NCBI GenBank assembly: GCA_047495785.1
Contig: JBLDXI010000038.1
Span: 558,001-622,000, forward strand
Reading direction: 5' to 3'
DNA length: 64,000 nt
From: Lepidodermella squamata
Lineage: Eukaryota > Animalia > Gastrotricha
Numbering within the stretch: position 1 is the stretch's first letter; every line of letters starts with the position of its first letter. Made by a program: the position numbers and the translations under genes. This document shows positions 35,321 to 44,300 of the stretch, piece after piece. The notes beneath the pieces were generated by a model. The model did no database searches and was not told the DNA's origin. It saw nothing but the letters and a program-made list of their open reading frames with translations.

Positions 35321-38300
35321 ATGGACTCGACCATAAGCGGTCAGCAGGATGGAAATGAGAGAGTCGATAACTCATCCGGTCAAGAAATGACCTCCGATCG
35401 CCATACCAATAGCGTGCCGATGTTCGAAGACAAAAGTAATCTTGAACGCCACTCAAGTTTGCGACGGGTTTCTACAATGCCGAGGAGGTAATAATTGTTC
35501 ATTTTTCCATAATTTTTGCTTGTGATAACTTATTCTGCACGGTGCGACAATGAAGCTGTCGGCCAGCCAGGTCGACGGTTTTCCGCTGAGTTTTTTGGTC
35601 TAAATATAGATCAATAGTTGCGAGAGCATGCACACAGGAAATTGCTGATTAAGCTCGGAAGTTTCGATCTTCGATTTCTCAATATTTTCATACAAACTGT
35701 GATTTTATTCTGCATATGGTACAAGCTTTATCACCATCCTGTTTACGAAGCCCATTTCATCACCGTAGAACATTATTGTAATACGGGGCATAAATTTACG
35801 ACTGCCGTACGCGCTTTCAGCTAAAAATAAAAGATTTGCATAGGTATAGCTTGCAAAAACTATCAATACGTAGGTATGTTCAAAGTTCCATTCTTTACTC
35901 TTCCGAAAATCAGGAACCGATCAGCGCCCAGACAGTGCGCTCGTTTCTCGTGACATAGCTATGCTAAGAAAAAGCGCGAGAAACTTGCAGATACACCAGC
36001 CCTTTCGCTGCATTCACCGCTTTTCTTGGGATATGTTTATTTTTCCGCCCGGCAAAAAGTATAACCGAGATATAACGATCAGCCGGTATTTTCTTAAATT
36101 GTTCCTTGTTCCAATTTTATCCAAAACGATATCTCTTAAGTTTTGTATTGGCGTGAAAAAGTCATGCTTGGTTTAGGCTAATAGGTGGCTGTAACATCGA
36201 TTTTTAAGAAATAATAATGTCCACATCTTCAAGCGACGTGAAGTTCATGCCTTAGGTAACCGGGCAGCCCTCTTTTCCCAAGTTACTGTCCGCCAGGAAA
36301 CATTATTGGCATAATGACGTTGAGTAGTATATAGAATTGTTTAGATAAACAAGGCGCTGATTATGATAAATGGCGCACAGTCAGCGCCGAACATCTAAAA
36401 AGCTGTTTGCTGGCCTGCAATAGGAGCGCGTAAAAGAATGTTGGAACTGGGAAGTGTCTGCGCTTTACCTCGCGAATAGTAAGCTCATTATCATTAGCTT
36501 TTTAGATCAGACGGCTATAAAGCGCAACAAGCTGGCGAACTTGGGCGGGCAGGCGGCCATACAGCAAGCGCCTATCATCACGTGGTGCCGCTGCTGCGCT
36601 CGCATTGCACCCGAATGGGCGCTGCCGCTAGTCACGCGAACGCAAAAGCGCTGTGTGATCGATACGCAGCGATCACCGATGATAATGATCGTAAAATATT
36701 GTTCGCGCTGATTTTACGACGCAGGCCTTCGGGACGGTGTAACTTGCGCCGCAGCCGCCGCCGCTTTCCGCTGGCCTAGTATATGAGCTTCCTCCTTTCC
36801 GCCTTTCCCATTTAGCGCGATCACTCGTGTGATTGACTCGTGTTTTGTTGATGCAGTCAGTCGATGCCCTCACCTGTTTGTCGTCTTTTAGTCACAAATA
36901 ATAAGCCCCTGGTTTTGTTGTTCCTTTTGCCTTTTTATTCTATGAAGACAATCCATCCGCGGGGACTCTAGGGTATAGAGGCTTAAAGCAGAACATCACG
37001 ACCGAAAGCAGAGCGCCGTCATCGGCCGGCTTGCTTTTCGCTGCTGCTCCTTTGATTCGCAGCGTACACTGGCGACCAGCGATCGGCTCGCGGCTCGCTA
37101 TCGAATCGCAGGTCACCAATAAGAGCATTATCCATCGCTTGACTGCATTACGCACAACAATCGGCGGAATGACTCGCGAGACCGCGATTCCGCGTGCTCC
37201 CTAGTGGCGCGGCAAATCTCGTCATGCCATTTACAAATATTACTCGCCCGCGCCCACCAGCCAACCCGCGTTTTTGGCCGAGAGATGTCCACTTCAAGCG
37301 AATTCACTTTTTCGCAACTTTCTATAGCTAAAAGCGACAAAATTGCTCACACTTAATTTTTTGTCACTCAGCCAAATTCTTCCTTTTGTTTTATTTGACA
37401 GGGTGACTTACGATGTTACCGAAAAGTGGTACTTTGTAGGAGGCGCAAGTGACCCGGGCCAACTGATACCGCCCGATATGGCCCAGGCTGATGACGAACT
37501 GCAGCGAACAGCAGTGCCGACATCGCTCCGGCGGGAAGAATCGACCAAACCAATCGTCGTTACCCCGGTGATGATTGACGAGGTCGGCAAAACAACGAAA
37601 AGCCGGCCGGATACTCGTGTGCCGTCGCCAGTTGCCTCAGACGTTGGGCTGTTCGCTGAAAAATCGTTCATTTGGATCGGTCGCGAAAATTACGTGCGAA
37701 GAGCGGCGATCCAACTGATTACTTGGAGATAAGTTTCCATCAATATTTTACTTAAAAAAGCTTTATTGAAGTCGTTTCATTTTTTTACTTGGTTTGAGCG
37801 GCTGTCAATATTCGTCATCTTAGTCAACTGTGTTACCCTGGGTGCCGTTGACCCTTGTGAGGGCGACACCTGTGTGACTTTACGCTGCTCGATTTTGCAG
37901 TTGCTCGACCACGTGATTTTTGCGTTCTTTGCGGTCGAAATGCTCATAAAATTGCTGGCGATGGGCGTCACAGGCAAAGGTGCTTACCTAGGCGAATCGT
38001 GGAACCGGCTTGACTTTTTCATCGTCATTGCGGGGTTTGTTTCTTTTTTAATTTTCTTTAAACTTGTCAAAGCAGCATTAATCCTTAAGAGTCCATTCGC
38101 ATTCTAAACTTTTTCCTTTACTATTCTTCTTCTAACTACTCTTCAAACTTTTATGGTTAAGAGGATAAATTTCTTGATTTAATTGTTTGTGAAAATGTTC
38201 TCATTGCTTAATTTTCAAGAGAACAGCTCAAAAGCAACTAAATTTGATAATTTTGCTGATATATAGAGCTGCTGAGTACGTCTTCGTGATGGAAAACATC

Positions 38301-41300
38301 AACCTGTCAGCGATTCGGACGATCCGCGTGCTGCGGCCACTGCGCGCCATTAACCGCATTCCCAGTTTGCGATTGCTCGTCATGCTGTTGCTCGATACAC
38401 TGCCTATGCTTGGCAACGTTCTGCTCATATGCTTTTTCGTTTTTTTCGTGTTCGGCATTGCTGGAGTGCAGTTATGGTCCGGAGTCTTGCGCCAACGTTG
38501 TTTCTTCCCACCGATCACGGATTCTTCTGCAATGATCTTAGCTGCCTCGCAACCGAACACCGCCTCGGTCGATAGCCAGCAAGGTGACACGAGCACTATT
38601 TCGCTGGTTCAACCAAAGCCTAACAATTCTCCTTCGCCTCTGTACTATCCTTCATTCATGCCGAAATACTACCGACCGCCACAGCGCGACTACGTCTGCT
38701 CTCCTTCGTCCGGTATTCTGCACTGCTCGGAAATCCCCAAATACGAGTCAGTTTCTTTTGAAAAATTCGCTATTGCCTTCCTTTTAGATTACTCTTTCCT
38801 AATTTCACACGATTGCTAATTTCTTTTTCAGGATTCTGAAAAGGTAAAATTAGGTGTGAACGGAATCATGATGAAGCACTGTGTGACTCTGTTGTGAATA
38901 ATGTACGATTGGGGTGGACCATTCGAAAAGTACGAAGATTAGGATCCAATCATTTTTATACTAATTAATATTGAAGCTTTTCCCTATTATTTAACCGTAA
39001 AGCCCGTTGTCTTCTCATATGACTGATAAAGATCAGCTCAAACTAATGCATGCATGCCACAAAAGCCGTAACCGTTGATTGCCTGTCGCTCTTCATGCCT
39101 GTAGGTTCAAGCCATGTATTCCGGGTCATCTGGGCAAATAAAAGAACCTTCTGGGAACTAAGACGATTATTACTGGTTGCAATATCAACTGGGGTAATCC
39201 GAAATTTGATAGCTTTTCTCTAGATGTGGCTCGTGGCTTTCCCCCATATGAATTGGATCAGCATTTACGGTTTTTCGTTCAATCGAAAAACGTAGTTTGT
39301 CGAGAAAAAGTTGAAAACATTCCTATTGAAATTACAGGCAGTACGATAGCATGTGCGTCGATTTATTCGGAAACGACACAGCCGAAACTGCCGAGTGCAA
39401 GTGGTGGTCGGACAATTACACCGAGTGTTTGCCCCTCGGACCGAACCCAGCCCGCGGCACCATCAGCTTCGACAACATCGGCCTAGCATGGGTTGCCATT
39501 TTTCAAGTTATCTCACTCGAAGGCTGGACGGAAGTTATGTATCTCATTCAGGTTTGTGTCTTGTCTCATCAATGCGAAGTGTTGAAGTTGGAAAATTCTC
39601 GTTTCAGGACGCGTATTCGTTTTGGGTTTGGCTGTATTTTGTCACTTTGATCATCATCGGTGCCTTTTTCGCCGTTAACTTGTGCCTCGTCGTTATAGCG
39701 ACGCAATTTTCCGAGACGAAAAGACGAGAACTTGCCAAAATGAAGCAAGAGCGCCGCGCTGCCACCTCGTCCCTATCAACGCTTCCTGAATCTGGCTCAG
39801 TGGCGCGCGTCAGTGTTGCCTCGGGTAGTCAAAGCAACATCTACACGCAGATCCTCGACGTCATTGGTCACGGCGCGCGGAAAGCTTATCGCTGGTATCG
39901 GCGGCGCCAAACTCGCGCTCGGCTGGCTCGCATGGCTGCAAATGGCCAAGTGGAAGGGGACCAACTAGTTGGCAATCTCAACAACAGTACGTCTTCAGCT
40001 CCGATGGCCTTCGCCAATGGTTATTTTTACGATCGGCCAGAACTATGCGCGACGTGCCGGCTAAATCAGCAGAACATGCAAAAAGCGCAAAAAGTCGAAA
40101 AAACGCGCAGCTCGGTCGAAGATGAAGTGTCATCAGAAGCGTGGGTGACTCCAGCAACATCGCCCACTCCCAGCCCTGCTGTCGCTCGTCGAACTCTCCT
40201 TCCCGAAACAGTCGACAAAGAGCCAAGTTCGGTGAGCAGTAACGATGGGTTTTGTTCAGCGGCGGGTAGCGAGGCCGCTCTTGACCGCATACCACCGGCT
40301 AGTGCCGTCGAACAAGGGGCAGAGCAAATCAAGCAGCCCAGTGTATGTCCTGTGTGCCAGCAGCTAAGCCACCCGCAATCTAACCGTTCGGTAGCGTTGA
40401 ATATCAGCCTGAATCAATCGGCGCCGAAACGGCTTCCGCCTGGCTTGATTAAGGTCCGAGAGCGGCTGCTAACATTATTAAATATGGCTCGAAGCTGGAT
40501 GAGGGTTGTTGTTGAGCACCCATCCACCACCTGGGCCATCATGGGCGCCATTTGCATCAACGCCTTGTCGATGGGCGCCGAGCACCACAACCAGCCGGAA
40601 ACATTGACTGCAGTCATAGAAGCGCTTAACCTCGTTTTTACAGCGTTTTTTGTCATTGAAATGCTCGCAAAGGTCTTTGTGTACGGCTTTGTGGGTTATA
40701 TTCGAGATAGTTTCAACTTGCTCGATTTTGTTATCGTAAGTCAGTTATAAATTTGACATAATTCAATATTTCGGTATTTGTCTCGCAGGTGATAATATCG
40801 GTTGTGGAACTGGCTCAAGGCAGTGCTTCAGGCCTGTCGGTTTTGAGGACTTTTCGCCTTGTTCGCATCGTCAAACTTATCCGCTTTCTGCCGGCGCTGC
40901 AGCGCCAACTCTATGTTATGCTGAAGACAATCGACAACGTCGCGACATTTTTTCTGTTGCTCAGTTTGTTCCTGTTCATTTTCTCCGTTCTTGGCATGTC
41001 TCTATTCGGCTGCCGGTTCTGCCCAGCCAACCGTGCGCGCATCGCCATGGAACAACAACAAGCTGCTTATGACGCGGCTGGCAACTGGTCGGTCGACGGA
41101 ATGCCGCCGTTGCGTGACGTCAACGGGACAGCGGCGCCCACGATGGCGCAGTATCAGCGTTGGTTGGAGCAGCAAACCGCGCTGGCCTACCACACCTGCC
41201 CTCGAGCCAACTTTGATTCGCTGCTGTGGTCTCTTCTTACTGTCTTCCAAGTACTCACGCAAGAAGCATGGGCTCAGGTAATAAAGTTTTATAGGTATGT

Positions 41301-44300
41301 TCGATAAAGACTAAAACTTATCAAAACGAACAGGTTTTGAAAGACGGGATGCATTTCACGTCCGAATGGGCTGCGTTGTATTTTGTTGCACTTGTTACGT
41401 TCGGCAATTACGTGCTTTTCAACTTGCTCGTTGCCATTCTCGTCGAAGGATTTAGCACAGACGAAGTAAGACCAATTAAATTACTTGCCTTCAATCACAT
41501 CTTCTCTATATTCGTAAATTAGAAAGATGAATCACCCGGCACTCCGAGAAGCTCGTCGGTGCCAGCAGAGGCGCAAACCCCAGGTGTAGCACGCTCCGCG
41601 TCCCAAAATCCTCCAACAGATTTACCAACCGCATCTTCACCTCCAGCAATTACCGTCGAAGACGTCGACGATCCAAATGGGGAACGGATATCTATTTTAC
41701 CTGGTAACGGTGGAGTAAGTGTTCCGAAAGAAGAGCCCGCGCCTCCTAGATGGACTTTGCGCAATTTATTCCGTTGCGGCATGACACGTCGTCAAAGCTG
41801 TTTCTCATCACTTCGCACTCGGCTGATGAACCACAATTTTTTCATCGAGCGCCGTGATTATTCTCTTTTCATGATGGCGCCGAACAACGGCCTCCGGCGG
41901 CGTTTGCTGTGGTTAGTGACCCGCACGCGATTCGACCATGTTGTCCTGGTTCTGATCATCGCCAACTGCGTCGCGATCGCCATGGAGCGCCCGAACATCG
42001 AACCTGGATCGTTCGAGCGTCGAGCTTTAAACATTGCCAATTACGTATTCAACGCGCTATTCGGAATTGAAGCTGTGCTCAAAATAGCAGCCCATGGTTT
42101 TGTCATTGGCGAACACACTTACTTGAAGAATAGCTGGAACGTGCTCGACTTCATTCTCATATCGCTGTCGACTCTGGACATGCTGCTCGAGGCGACTGAT
42201 GCCAAGACAGCGTCGACGAAAATTCTTGAAATTTTCCGCGTAATGCGGTTATTGCGAGCTTTGAGGCCGTTGCGAGTCATCAACCGAGCGCCTGGCCTGA
42301 AAATTGTCGTGCAAACGCTGGTTCTCTCAGTGAAACCTATAGGAAACATCGTTCTAATCTGCTTAGCTTTCTTCCTCATCTTTGGTATTCTCGGGGTACA
42401 GCTGTTTCGAGGCTGCTTCTACAAATGCGTCGCAAACGGGCGAACTGCACCAGTTAATACTAATTCTAGCATTCTCAGCTCAAACATGTCTTTCCAAGCG
42501 CCATTTGGCCAAGCTGACGCGACATCAACCTCAACGCCGCCAATCAACGTGGGAGTTCCTGGCTCCGGTGTCGGTTCGGCGGCTGCTCTGGTTGCAGAAG
42601 CGCTCATGTCTGTGAAAACTAAGAACGATTGCCTTGCTCTCGGCTTCGAGTGGGAAAATGAGAATTATAATTTCGATAACCTCGGAAACGGGCTGATGAC
42701 GTTGTTCGTGTTTTCAACGTTCGATGGCTGGGTCAAAATTACTCGTGATGGTCTAGATTGTGTTGGCGTCGATAAACAACCCATCCATGATTACAACCCA
42801 TGGCGCCTAGTCTATTTTATTTCCTTCCTTCTTATCGTTGGCTTTTTCGTGAGTTCTTATTCATACTGCGAATATTTTTTGGAGTTTTAGTTTTTTTATA
42901 GGTGCTCAACATGTTCGTGGGTGTTGTAGTTAACAACTTTCAGAAGGTGCGCAAGCAAATTGAGGCAGAGATAGAAGCAAAGAAGCGCGAGATCAAAGCG
43001 AGAAAGCTACTCGAGCGGCTCCAAAACAAGTCGGAAACGAAGAAAAGAGGTACGTATAAAGCGTTCGAACGCTGCTATTTTTTAAATTTCCCCAAGGTCA
43101 CCCATTAATTTGCCAACAATCAAATGCTTCCGTCGAAGAAGAAGCTCATTGTCTTTGTGTGAAGCTGAAAAAACAGTGCAATTTTTTATTATGAATTGCA
43201 AGCCAACCGCAGCTTCAATTTGCTACCGGTATTTAATTTTTTCGTGTTCATTTGGGTAGCGTCGAGACTCTTCAGTTTATCCACCTTCAAAAGGGTCAAG
43301 CGACCATCGCTCAAGAGTAAAAATTGTATTACGAACTTGAATTTACGTTCATTGAGCTCACCTAATATTTTGACTCTTTCCTTCTTAATACGAAGCTACG
43401 GATTTTTTATTACTTTCATTGCCTGAATAATTTATTTTTAATCTGGGTCAAATGAAAATTGCGCCTCACTTGATTTTTCCATCTAGGATTATAACTTCTA
43501 TTTCCTGAATAATTTCCTTTGGAGCAGCACTGAAAAAAACTTGACCATCACATGGAGATTAATGCTCTCATTACCAATGTTTCCCCTGCACCAATATTTG
43601 CGATTTGTTCGGGCAATTTTATCCCTCATATTAAATGATCCGTTCTACGACATTTTTTATTTAATACTATTATTATTTGTGGTCCTCAGTCTACCGCCGG
43701 CGTCTTCGAAGGATGATGATGTGTTATAGGAGGACGGCGGGTAGTCTAGATGGCGACAAGCCGCCGCCAGCCAACGGTAACGCCAGTTGTAGCAGTCATG
43801 AAACTGATGAGTTTTCATCGGGCGGCGCCTCGCCAGCACCAAGCTTACTAAACCACACCGTTCGCAGCTTGCACCGCCTCGATAGCTGCGCAAGCTCACG
43901 CCAACACGTGCGCGTTACACTGCCGGTCAACCGCGTCGACAGTGAGCCCATCCGCATGCGCCTCGACTCAGCCTGCTCCGCGTCGTCGTCGCGCTGCTCC
44001 GTCATCCTCAACAATCACCCCGAACACCACTCACAGGTGACGAGCAGCGTTGCGACGCCGTCCGAGAGTGGGGTTGCGGTTGATGCGCATGCGACTGGCG
44101 ATGCGGCGCCCCCGTCATCGCCTCGAGGCGGTGGGTTGCCGAGGGGCAAAGGTGCAGTGCCGAGTCGCTTCACACAGCGCAGAAAAGCCACTGTATTCAG
44201 TAGGTCACATTGCGAGCACGCGTTTTCACGTATGATGATGTATCACCTCGGAACTTTTCGGGACTTGTTCGCAACATGATTAAGTTTGCTTCACATGAGT

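Follow-up and report, generated by a model that had tools for sequence, protein, structure and literature searches.

U2-dependent AT-AC introns were first known from sodium-channel genes, and Wu and Krainer are said to have described them in 1997 as a type II class, with SCN4A and SCN5A among the examples. Genome-wide counts of U2-type AT-AC introns stand at 15 in human, 6 in mouse, 3 in fly and 0 in Caenorhabditis elegans (Sheth et al., 2006, PMC1557818). A rare pathway leading from U12-type AT-AC to U2-type AT-AC introns has been set out, together with the argument that the products are trapped (Lin et al., 2010, PMC2831892). C. elegans provides a second point of comparison, since its genome retains vestigial U12-like introns, which are former minor introns persisting without detectable minor snRNAs (PMC1557818; Olthof et al., 2024, PMC11347168). 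In Arabidopsis, a DROL1/TXNL4B-type U5 protein is reported to be required for AT-AC introns (bioRxiv 10.1101/2020.10.19.345900). Nematodes, myxozoans, oikopleurids and tardigrades are the animals listed as being without minor splicing, and gastrotrichs do not appear in that list (Larue et al., 2023). Our literature search found no paper linking gastrotrichs with U12 splicing and none reporting loss of the minor spliceosome in them, and the genome paper of the gastrotrich Lepidodermella squamata mentions neither introns nor splicing (PMC11660948).

The case considered here is a 60-nt intron of a Cav3 gene, located in a 64,000-nt stretch of L. squamata DNA (the window). It shares with the type II introns of SCN4A and SCN5A the AT-AC ends, a U2-type 5' site with G at +5, AG at -2/-1 and the lack of a U12 branch box; in all these cases the host gene encodes a four-domain voltage-gated channel. 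Unlike SCN4A and SCN5A, the gene belongs to a gastrotrich seemingly devoid of a minor spliceosome, the intron is very short, and in the same genome the site also exists with AT-AA ends, with GT-AG ends, in slid form, or without an intron. Like the C. elegans relics, the intron is a former minor intron whose genome shows no detectable minor snRNAs, and the major machinery probably splices both; however, the relics retain a U12-like GT-AG 5' site, whereas the Cav3 intron combines a fully U2-like 5' site with surviving AT-AC termini. Compared with the ancestral U12-type Cav3 intron, as represented by intron 1 of Drosophila Ca-alpha1T, the human orthologs and metagenome loci L030-L073, the position, phase 2 and the AT and AC termini are the same, but L. 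squamata has ATAAGT in place of ATATCCTT, no TTCCTTRAC lies 10-20 nt from the end, and searches of the genome yielded no minor snRNAs. Judged from these sequence features, the intron very probably represents a U12-to-U2 conversion which retained its AT-AC ends and would now depend on the major spliceosome, with apparent loss of the minor one. It thus offers a well-supported new example of a rare conversion route that has already been described.

Assignment of the host gene to Cav3 follows from exon open reading frames covering four ion_trans domains, which are nearest to named T-type channels. The exon behind the intron, when searched singly, carries PF00520 and shares 68% identity with a protein bearing the name alpha-1G-like; the exon in front of it encodes the N-terminus of the channel, and the remaining gene continues as open exons downstream. 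An NxxRRx9WFE motif spanning the join of the upstream exon across the intron is common to the paralogs. Table 1 summarizes the features of the locus together with the paralogous sites; slashes mark splice junctions. A possible start codon is the in-frame ATG at 37478, 83 codons upstream of the intron, and with this start the AT-AC intron would be the first coding intron. The acceptor AG at 37400-37401 sits 76 nt upstream of this ATG, and a short out-of-frame uORF begins at 37413; this acceptor may be a trans-splice site of the Cav3 mRNA. A UQCRC2 gene is located nearby, whose top named relatives are spiralian (36-38% identity) and whose matches among metagenome proteins reach 69-74%.

Table 1. 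Coordinates of the Cav3 intron and its surroundings in the window, and states of the homologous site elsewhere in the genome
Feature	Position	Strand	Remarks
Upstream coding exon, Cav3	37402..37728	+	open frame; conserved peptide and AG of the split codon at its end; acceptor AG 37400-37401
AT-AC intron	37729..37788	+	60 nt, phase 2; other splice pairs excluded; counterparts in paralogs and metagenome orthologs
5' splice site AG/ATAAGTTT	37727..37736	+	complementary to U1 5' end AAACUUACCU, mismatch at +1 alone
Candidate U2-type branch region TTACTTAAA	37748..37756	+	33 nt from 3' end; 7/9 against TTCCTTRAY
T7 tract, then terminal AC	37780..37788	+	read from sequence
Exon (S)WFERLS...FFIVIAG, segments IS1-IS3 of T-type channel	37789..38034	+	translated sequence
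Next intron, GT-AG, 232 nt	38035..38266	+	ordinary
Comparison GT-AG intron, 55 nt	39553..39607	+	same gene
Comparison GT-AG intron, 53 nt, GTAAGT donor	40736..40788	+	same gene
Comparison GT-AG intron, 56 nt	41278..41333	+	same gene
Comparison GT-AG intron, 57 nt	41466..41522	+	same gene
Comparison GT-AG intron, 53 nt	42849..42901	+	same gene
Site AT-AC, AG/ATAAGT donor	this gene; C32:4393090 (52 nt); C32:4409276 (265 nt)
Site AT-AA, AG/ATAAGT donor	C12:1123279 (L020, 418 nt); C20:2650111 (L015, 55 nt)		3' end ...TTTCAA/G
Site GT-AG, same phase	C32:4479031; also Cav1-like gene (C54) and NALCN-like gene (C15)
Site GT-AG, slid 1 base	C32:4335652 (L008)		TGG CGG/GTAAAT...GATAG/TGG, phase 0
Site without intron	6 paralogs

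Read without splicing, the frame runs through TGG AGA TAA into an immediate stop, and the junction reads ATT ACT TGG AG/ATAAGTTTCC...CATTTTTTTAC/T TGG TTT GAG. All in-frame, stop-free GT-AG, GC-AG and AT-AN pairs around the site were enumerated. No GT-AG or GC-AG pair in this full enumeration preserves both conserved flanks: every such alternative has a weak donor (GTGCGA, GTCGCG, GCGGCG and similar) and either removes the conserved peptide at the end of the upstream exon and/or WFE, or inserts a non-homologous SFHFFT. The claim of the preliminary description that no usable GT-AG pair exists is thereby borne out. The AT-AC pair is the only one giving the conserved protein join, with a spacing of 9 residues between RR and WFE, which is also found in three of the four intronless paralogs retaining the motif (C42:4096522, C32:4399902 and C32:4417844; C32:4345401 was left out of this comparison). 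Removal of 60 nt to give W-S-W-F-E, as had been proposed, is accordingly the only fitting solution, and its length is ordinary and similar to that of the short GT-AG introns of the same gene (53-57 nt).

It could be supposed that transcripts are instead spliced through a GT-AG pair, such as one joining donor 37694 to acceptor 37771 or 37798, the AT-AC ends then being coincidental. These pairs are indeed in frame and free of stops; however, donor 37694 is a weak GTGCGA, the upstream conserved peptide and/or WFE that would be lost are kept in every paralog and ortholog, and AG/ATAAGT at the homologous base is common to five paralogs, this gene included, so that such splicing is very highly improbable. 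Word searches for transcript fragments gave no matches with exon 1, and with exon 2 the top match (68%) came from another species, with no transcript-derived fragment of the Cav3 gene. Sequence comparison confirms, as first noted, that 37729-37788 has the properties of a real intron of an intact T-type channel gene, and we infer that this junction is used in the mRNA, with splicing by the major spliceosome.

The signals of the intron are those of a U2-type (type II) AT-AC intron, comprising AT...AC ends and a U2-type donor save for +1, with no U12 signals. Its 5' site, AG/ATAAGT, matches the U2-type consensus including G at +5 but has A at +1; ATATCC is absent, and the extended site reads ATAAGTTT rather than the U12-type ATATCCTT. 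All 30 U1 copies read (of 42; loci L112-L141) start AAACTTACCTGGCA, and U1 can therefore pair with the site from -2 to +8 save at +1. No compensating U1 variant with an altered position 8 occurs among these 30 copies. The copies read start AAACTTACCTG, and the usual metazoan U1 5' end is AUACUUACCUG; position 2 would therefore be A and not U, which would add a base pair with the U at intron position +7.

A U12 branch box, TTCCTTRAY, was sought 8-22 nt from the 3' end of the intron, where the top match is 6/9, compared with a median of 9/9 in orthologs elsewhere. The top match anywhere in the 60 nt is the 7/9 of TTACTTAAA, which is too distant from the 3' end for U12 use. This stretch is a plausible U2-type branch region to judge from its sequence, and it may also be a relic of the former U12 branch box. 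The earlier observations of an ATAAGT donor instead of ATATCC, of a poly-T tract and of no clear U12 branch site therefore hold.

Comparison with other animals indicates the origin of this intron. Eighty metagenome-contig loci encoding the same exon were fetched, and of these the 31 distinct loci with a match beginning at WFE were used. In 29 of these, the preceding intron ends in AC exactly 1 base before TGG TTY GAR, at the same base and in the same phase 2 as the Cav3 intron of L. squamata. The TTCCTTRAY box of the metagenome orthologs lies 10-20 nt from the intron end, with a median match of 9/9. Two distinct ortholog donors were recovered, in L051/L054 (342 nt) and L046 (93 nt); in each case ATATCCTTT follows an exon end that matches. 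Intron 1 of the Drosophila T-type channel is likewise AT-AC U12-type and conserved with human (Lin et al., 2010, Table 2, PMC2831892). The AC ends, branch boxes and ATATCCTTT donors of the orthologs identify the site in front of IS1 of Cav3 as an old U12-type AT-AC site. The premise from which the preliminary description had started, an ancient U12 AT-AC intron just before IS1, thus holds for Cav3 to the base and phase, the alignment of intron positions with orthologs that it had recommended giving the same answer.

T-type (Cav3) genes number 1-3 in most animals. Counted by IS1 exons, Cav3 in L. squamata amounts to a large local gene expansion: about 12 Cav3-like genes are present, 8 of them clustered at C32 4.33-4.48 Mb and the others located on C12, C13, C20 and C42 (loci L007-L021). 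At the homologous site, three genes (this one included) have AT-AC, two have AT-AA, one has GT-AG and another GT-AG in slid form, and six have no intron. In the AT-AA cases ...TTTCAA/G TGG is the only in-frame 3' end. AT-AA ends are known among U12-type introns; their pairing with a U2-type donor would be unusual in a genome where minor snRNAs are not detectable. The paralog at C32:4335652 looks like a one-base intron slide accompanying a switch from AT-AC to GT-AG. U2-type GT-AG introns also occupy the homologous phase-2 site in the Cav1-like gene (C54:3670928, L024) and the NALCN-like gene (C15:3887805, L023). In both, CCCTTT(T)AAT occurs some 6-11 nt short of the 3' end, perhaps as a leftover U12 branch box, perhaps by chance.

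A tree of the 82-residue exon resolves two local clades with weak support, both containing ATAAGT donors, so the conversion seems older than the Cav3 expansion. After conversion, repeated intron loss and occasional end switching seem to have taken place among the paralogs. The GT-AG paralogs at the same site might suggest that AT-AC ends arose anew from a GT-AG intron, or by fresh intron insertion, instead of by U12 descent. Against this, in the outgroups the site is overwhelmingly U12 AT-AC at the identical base and phase, both clades of the exon tree include ATAAGT donors, and a change from GT-AG to AT-AC requires two simultaneous changes without gain; an origin of this kind is highly improbable.

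The paralogs also bear on the quality of the sequence. The assembly that is the probable source derives from MDA-amplified DNA, and amplification or assembly error, or decay of the gene into a pseudogene, could be suspected. Yet the reads are HiFi, identical ends recur in independent paralogs, every exon that was read is open and conserved, and this copy, with 71% identity to its top metagenome match, has the shortest branch among the paralogs of its own genome in the exon tree, which makes such an artefact or decay extremely improbable. Chance or assembly error, the latter having been named at the outset as what could overturn the intron, is unlikely, given that AG/ATAAGT is found at the homologous base in four further paralogs of this genome, and sequencing error is improbable in view of the related states that the paralogs bear at this site. 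Descent from the U12-type intron, with subsequent conversion, remains the preferred account of the AT-AC ends.

Spliceosomal snRNAs were searched with Rfam models over the whole assembly (121.2 Mb, 151 contigs, about 44% GC), only the best first-look candidates being scored. Among these candidates U11, U12 and U4atac gave 0 matches in the whole 121-Mb assembly, while the same searches returned 42 matches for U1, 47 for U2 and 32 for U6 as controls. A single U6atac match scored 24.8 bits, falling short of the gathering score (33), and covers 90 nt at L001:1501-1590 (C43:167990-168079). It was rejected as a chance match, having an open Cys-rich frame, AUC in place of the AGC triad and no T-run, and this stretch probably lies inside a coding exon. 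A U12 5'-region pattern gave 2 matches, each with 3 mismatches, where the control gave 3; Rfam did not find the two U12-like, and they were not retained as relic U12 genes. The pattern for short canonical U12 introns yielded 2 matches against 6 in the control. PDCD7 (PF16021), taken as a marker of minor-specific proteins, had no match, but the control gave none either.

These non-exhaustive searches thus did not recover U11, U12, U4atac and U6atac as genes encoded by the genome. Absence of the minor snRNAs is not thereby proven, because only the best first-look candidates were scored and the published assembly has a BUSCO completeness of 80.8% (PMC11660948). The incompleteness of the assembly, the scoring of top candidates only and the weak U6atac-like match would all suit the idea that a minor spliceosome still removes the intron, with snRNAs too divergent or located in unassembled DNA. 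However, the donor is ATAAGT rather than ATATCC and no branch box lies at U12 distance, the U6atac-like stretch has a coding-like open frame with neither AGC triad nor terminator, and the counts of the U12 motif and of the U12-intron pattern are at control level. Removal by a minor spliceosome is therefore very unlikely, and the suggestion, made when the intron was first noted, that the lineage had lost this machinery is favoured by the failure of these searches to recover minor snRNAs beside dozens of U1, U2 and U6 matches. A stronger version of this view holds that the minor spliceosome was wholly lost in gastrotrichs, or at least in L. squamata, and that the major spliceosome carried an ex-U12 +1A intron through more than 10 duplications, tolerating C as well as A at the last position; we regard its chances as evenly balanced.

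The proposal that a U12-to-U2 conversion kept the AT-AC ends, which had been put forward in the preliminary description, is supported by the ortholog U12 sites, the U2-type signals and the failure to find minor snRNAs. Its course may be envisaged as follows. The ancestor of the intron would be an ancient U12-type AT-AC intron lying 1 base ahead of the codons for WFE, where IS1 begins. Substitutions from +3 to +6 would have made ATAAGT out of ATATCC, and decay would have removed the TTCCTTRAC branch box; with the altered donor and the lost branch box, the intron would now be recognised by U1, U2 and U2AF. U1 is predicted to pair with AG/AUAAGUUU at all positions but +1, and U2 and U2AF would act on a branch region farther upstream and on the T7 tract. 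The second step presumably works since +1A with -1C may substitute for the usual G-G contact. Altering one end alone would block splicing, and the AT-AC ends would for this reason persist as a trapped relic. The conversion probably predates the local Cav3 expansion and would go with the apparent loss of the minor spliceosome.

Conversion of minor into major introns is usually inferred across distant species pairs. Here, five states are found in about 12 paralogs of one genome, and the starting point of the series is fixed by outgroup sequences. The intron supports the view (Lin et al., 2010, PMC2831892) that U2-type AT-AC introns are intermediates which have become trapped, and the family offers testable cases of a major spliceosome acting on +1 A with -1 C or A. 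Gastrotrichs are a phylum in which splicing has not yet been studied, and they may be a further animal phylum without minor splicing. Gene finders that admit only GT-AG and GC-AG introns will split these channel genes at IS1 or predict them wrongly there. If complete loss of the minor spliceosome with passage of the +1A intron through the duplications is true, the Cav3 family would constitute a natural series of minor-intron death, comprising capture, trapping, end-switching, sliding and loss.
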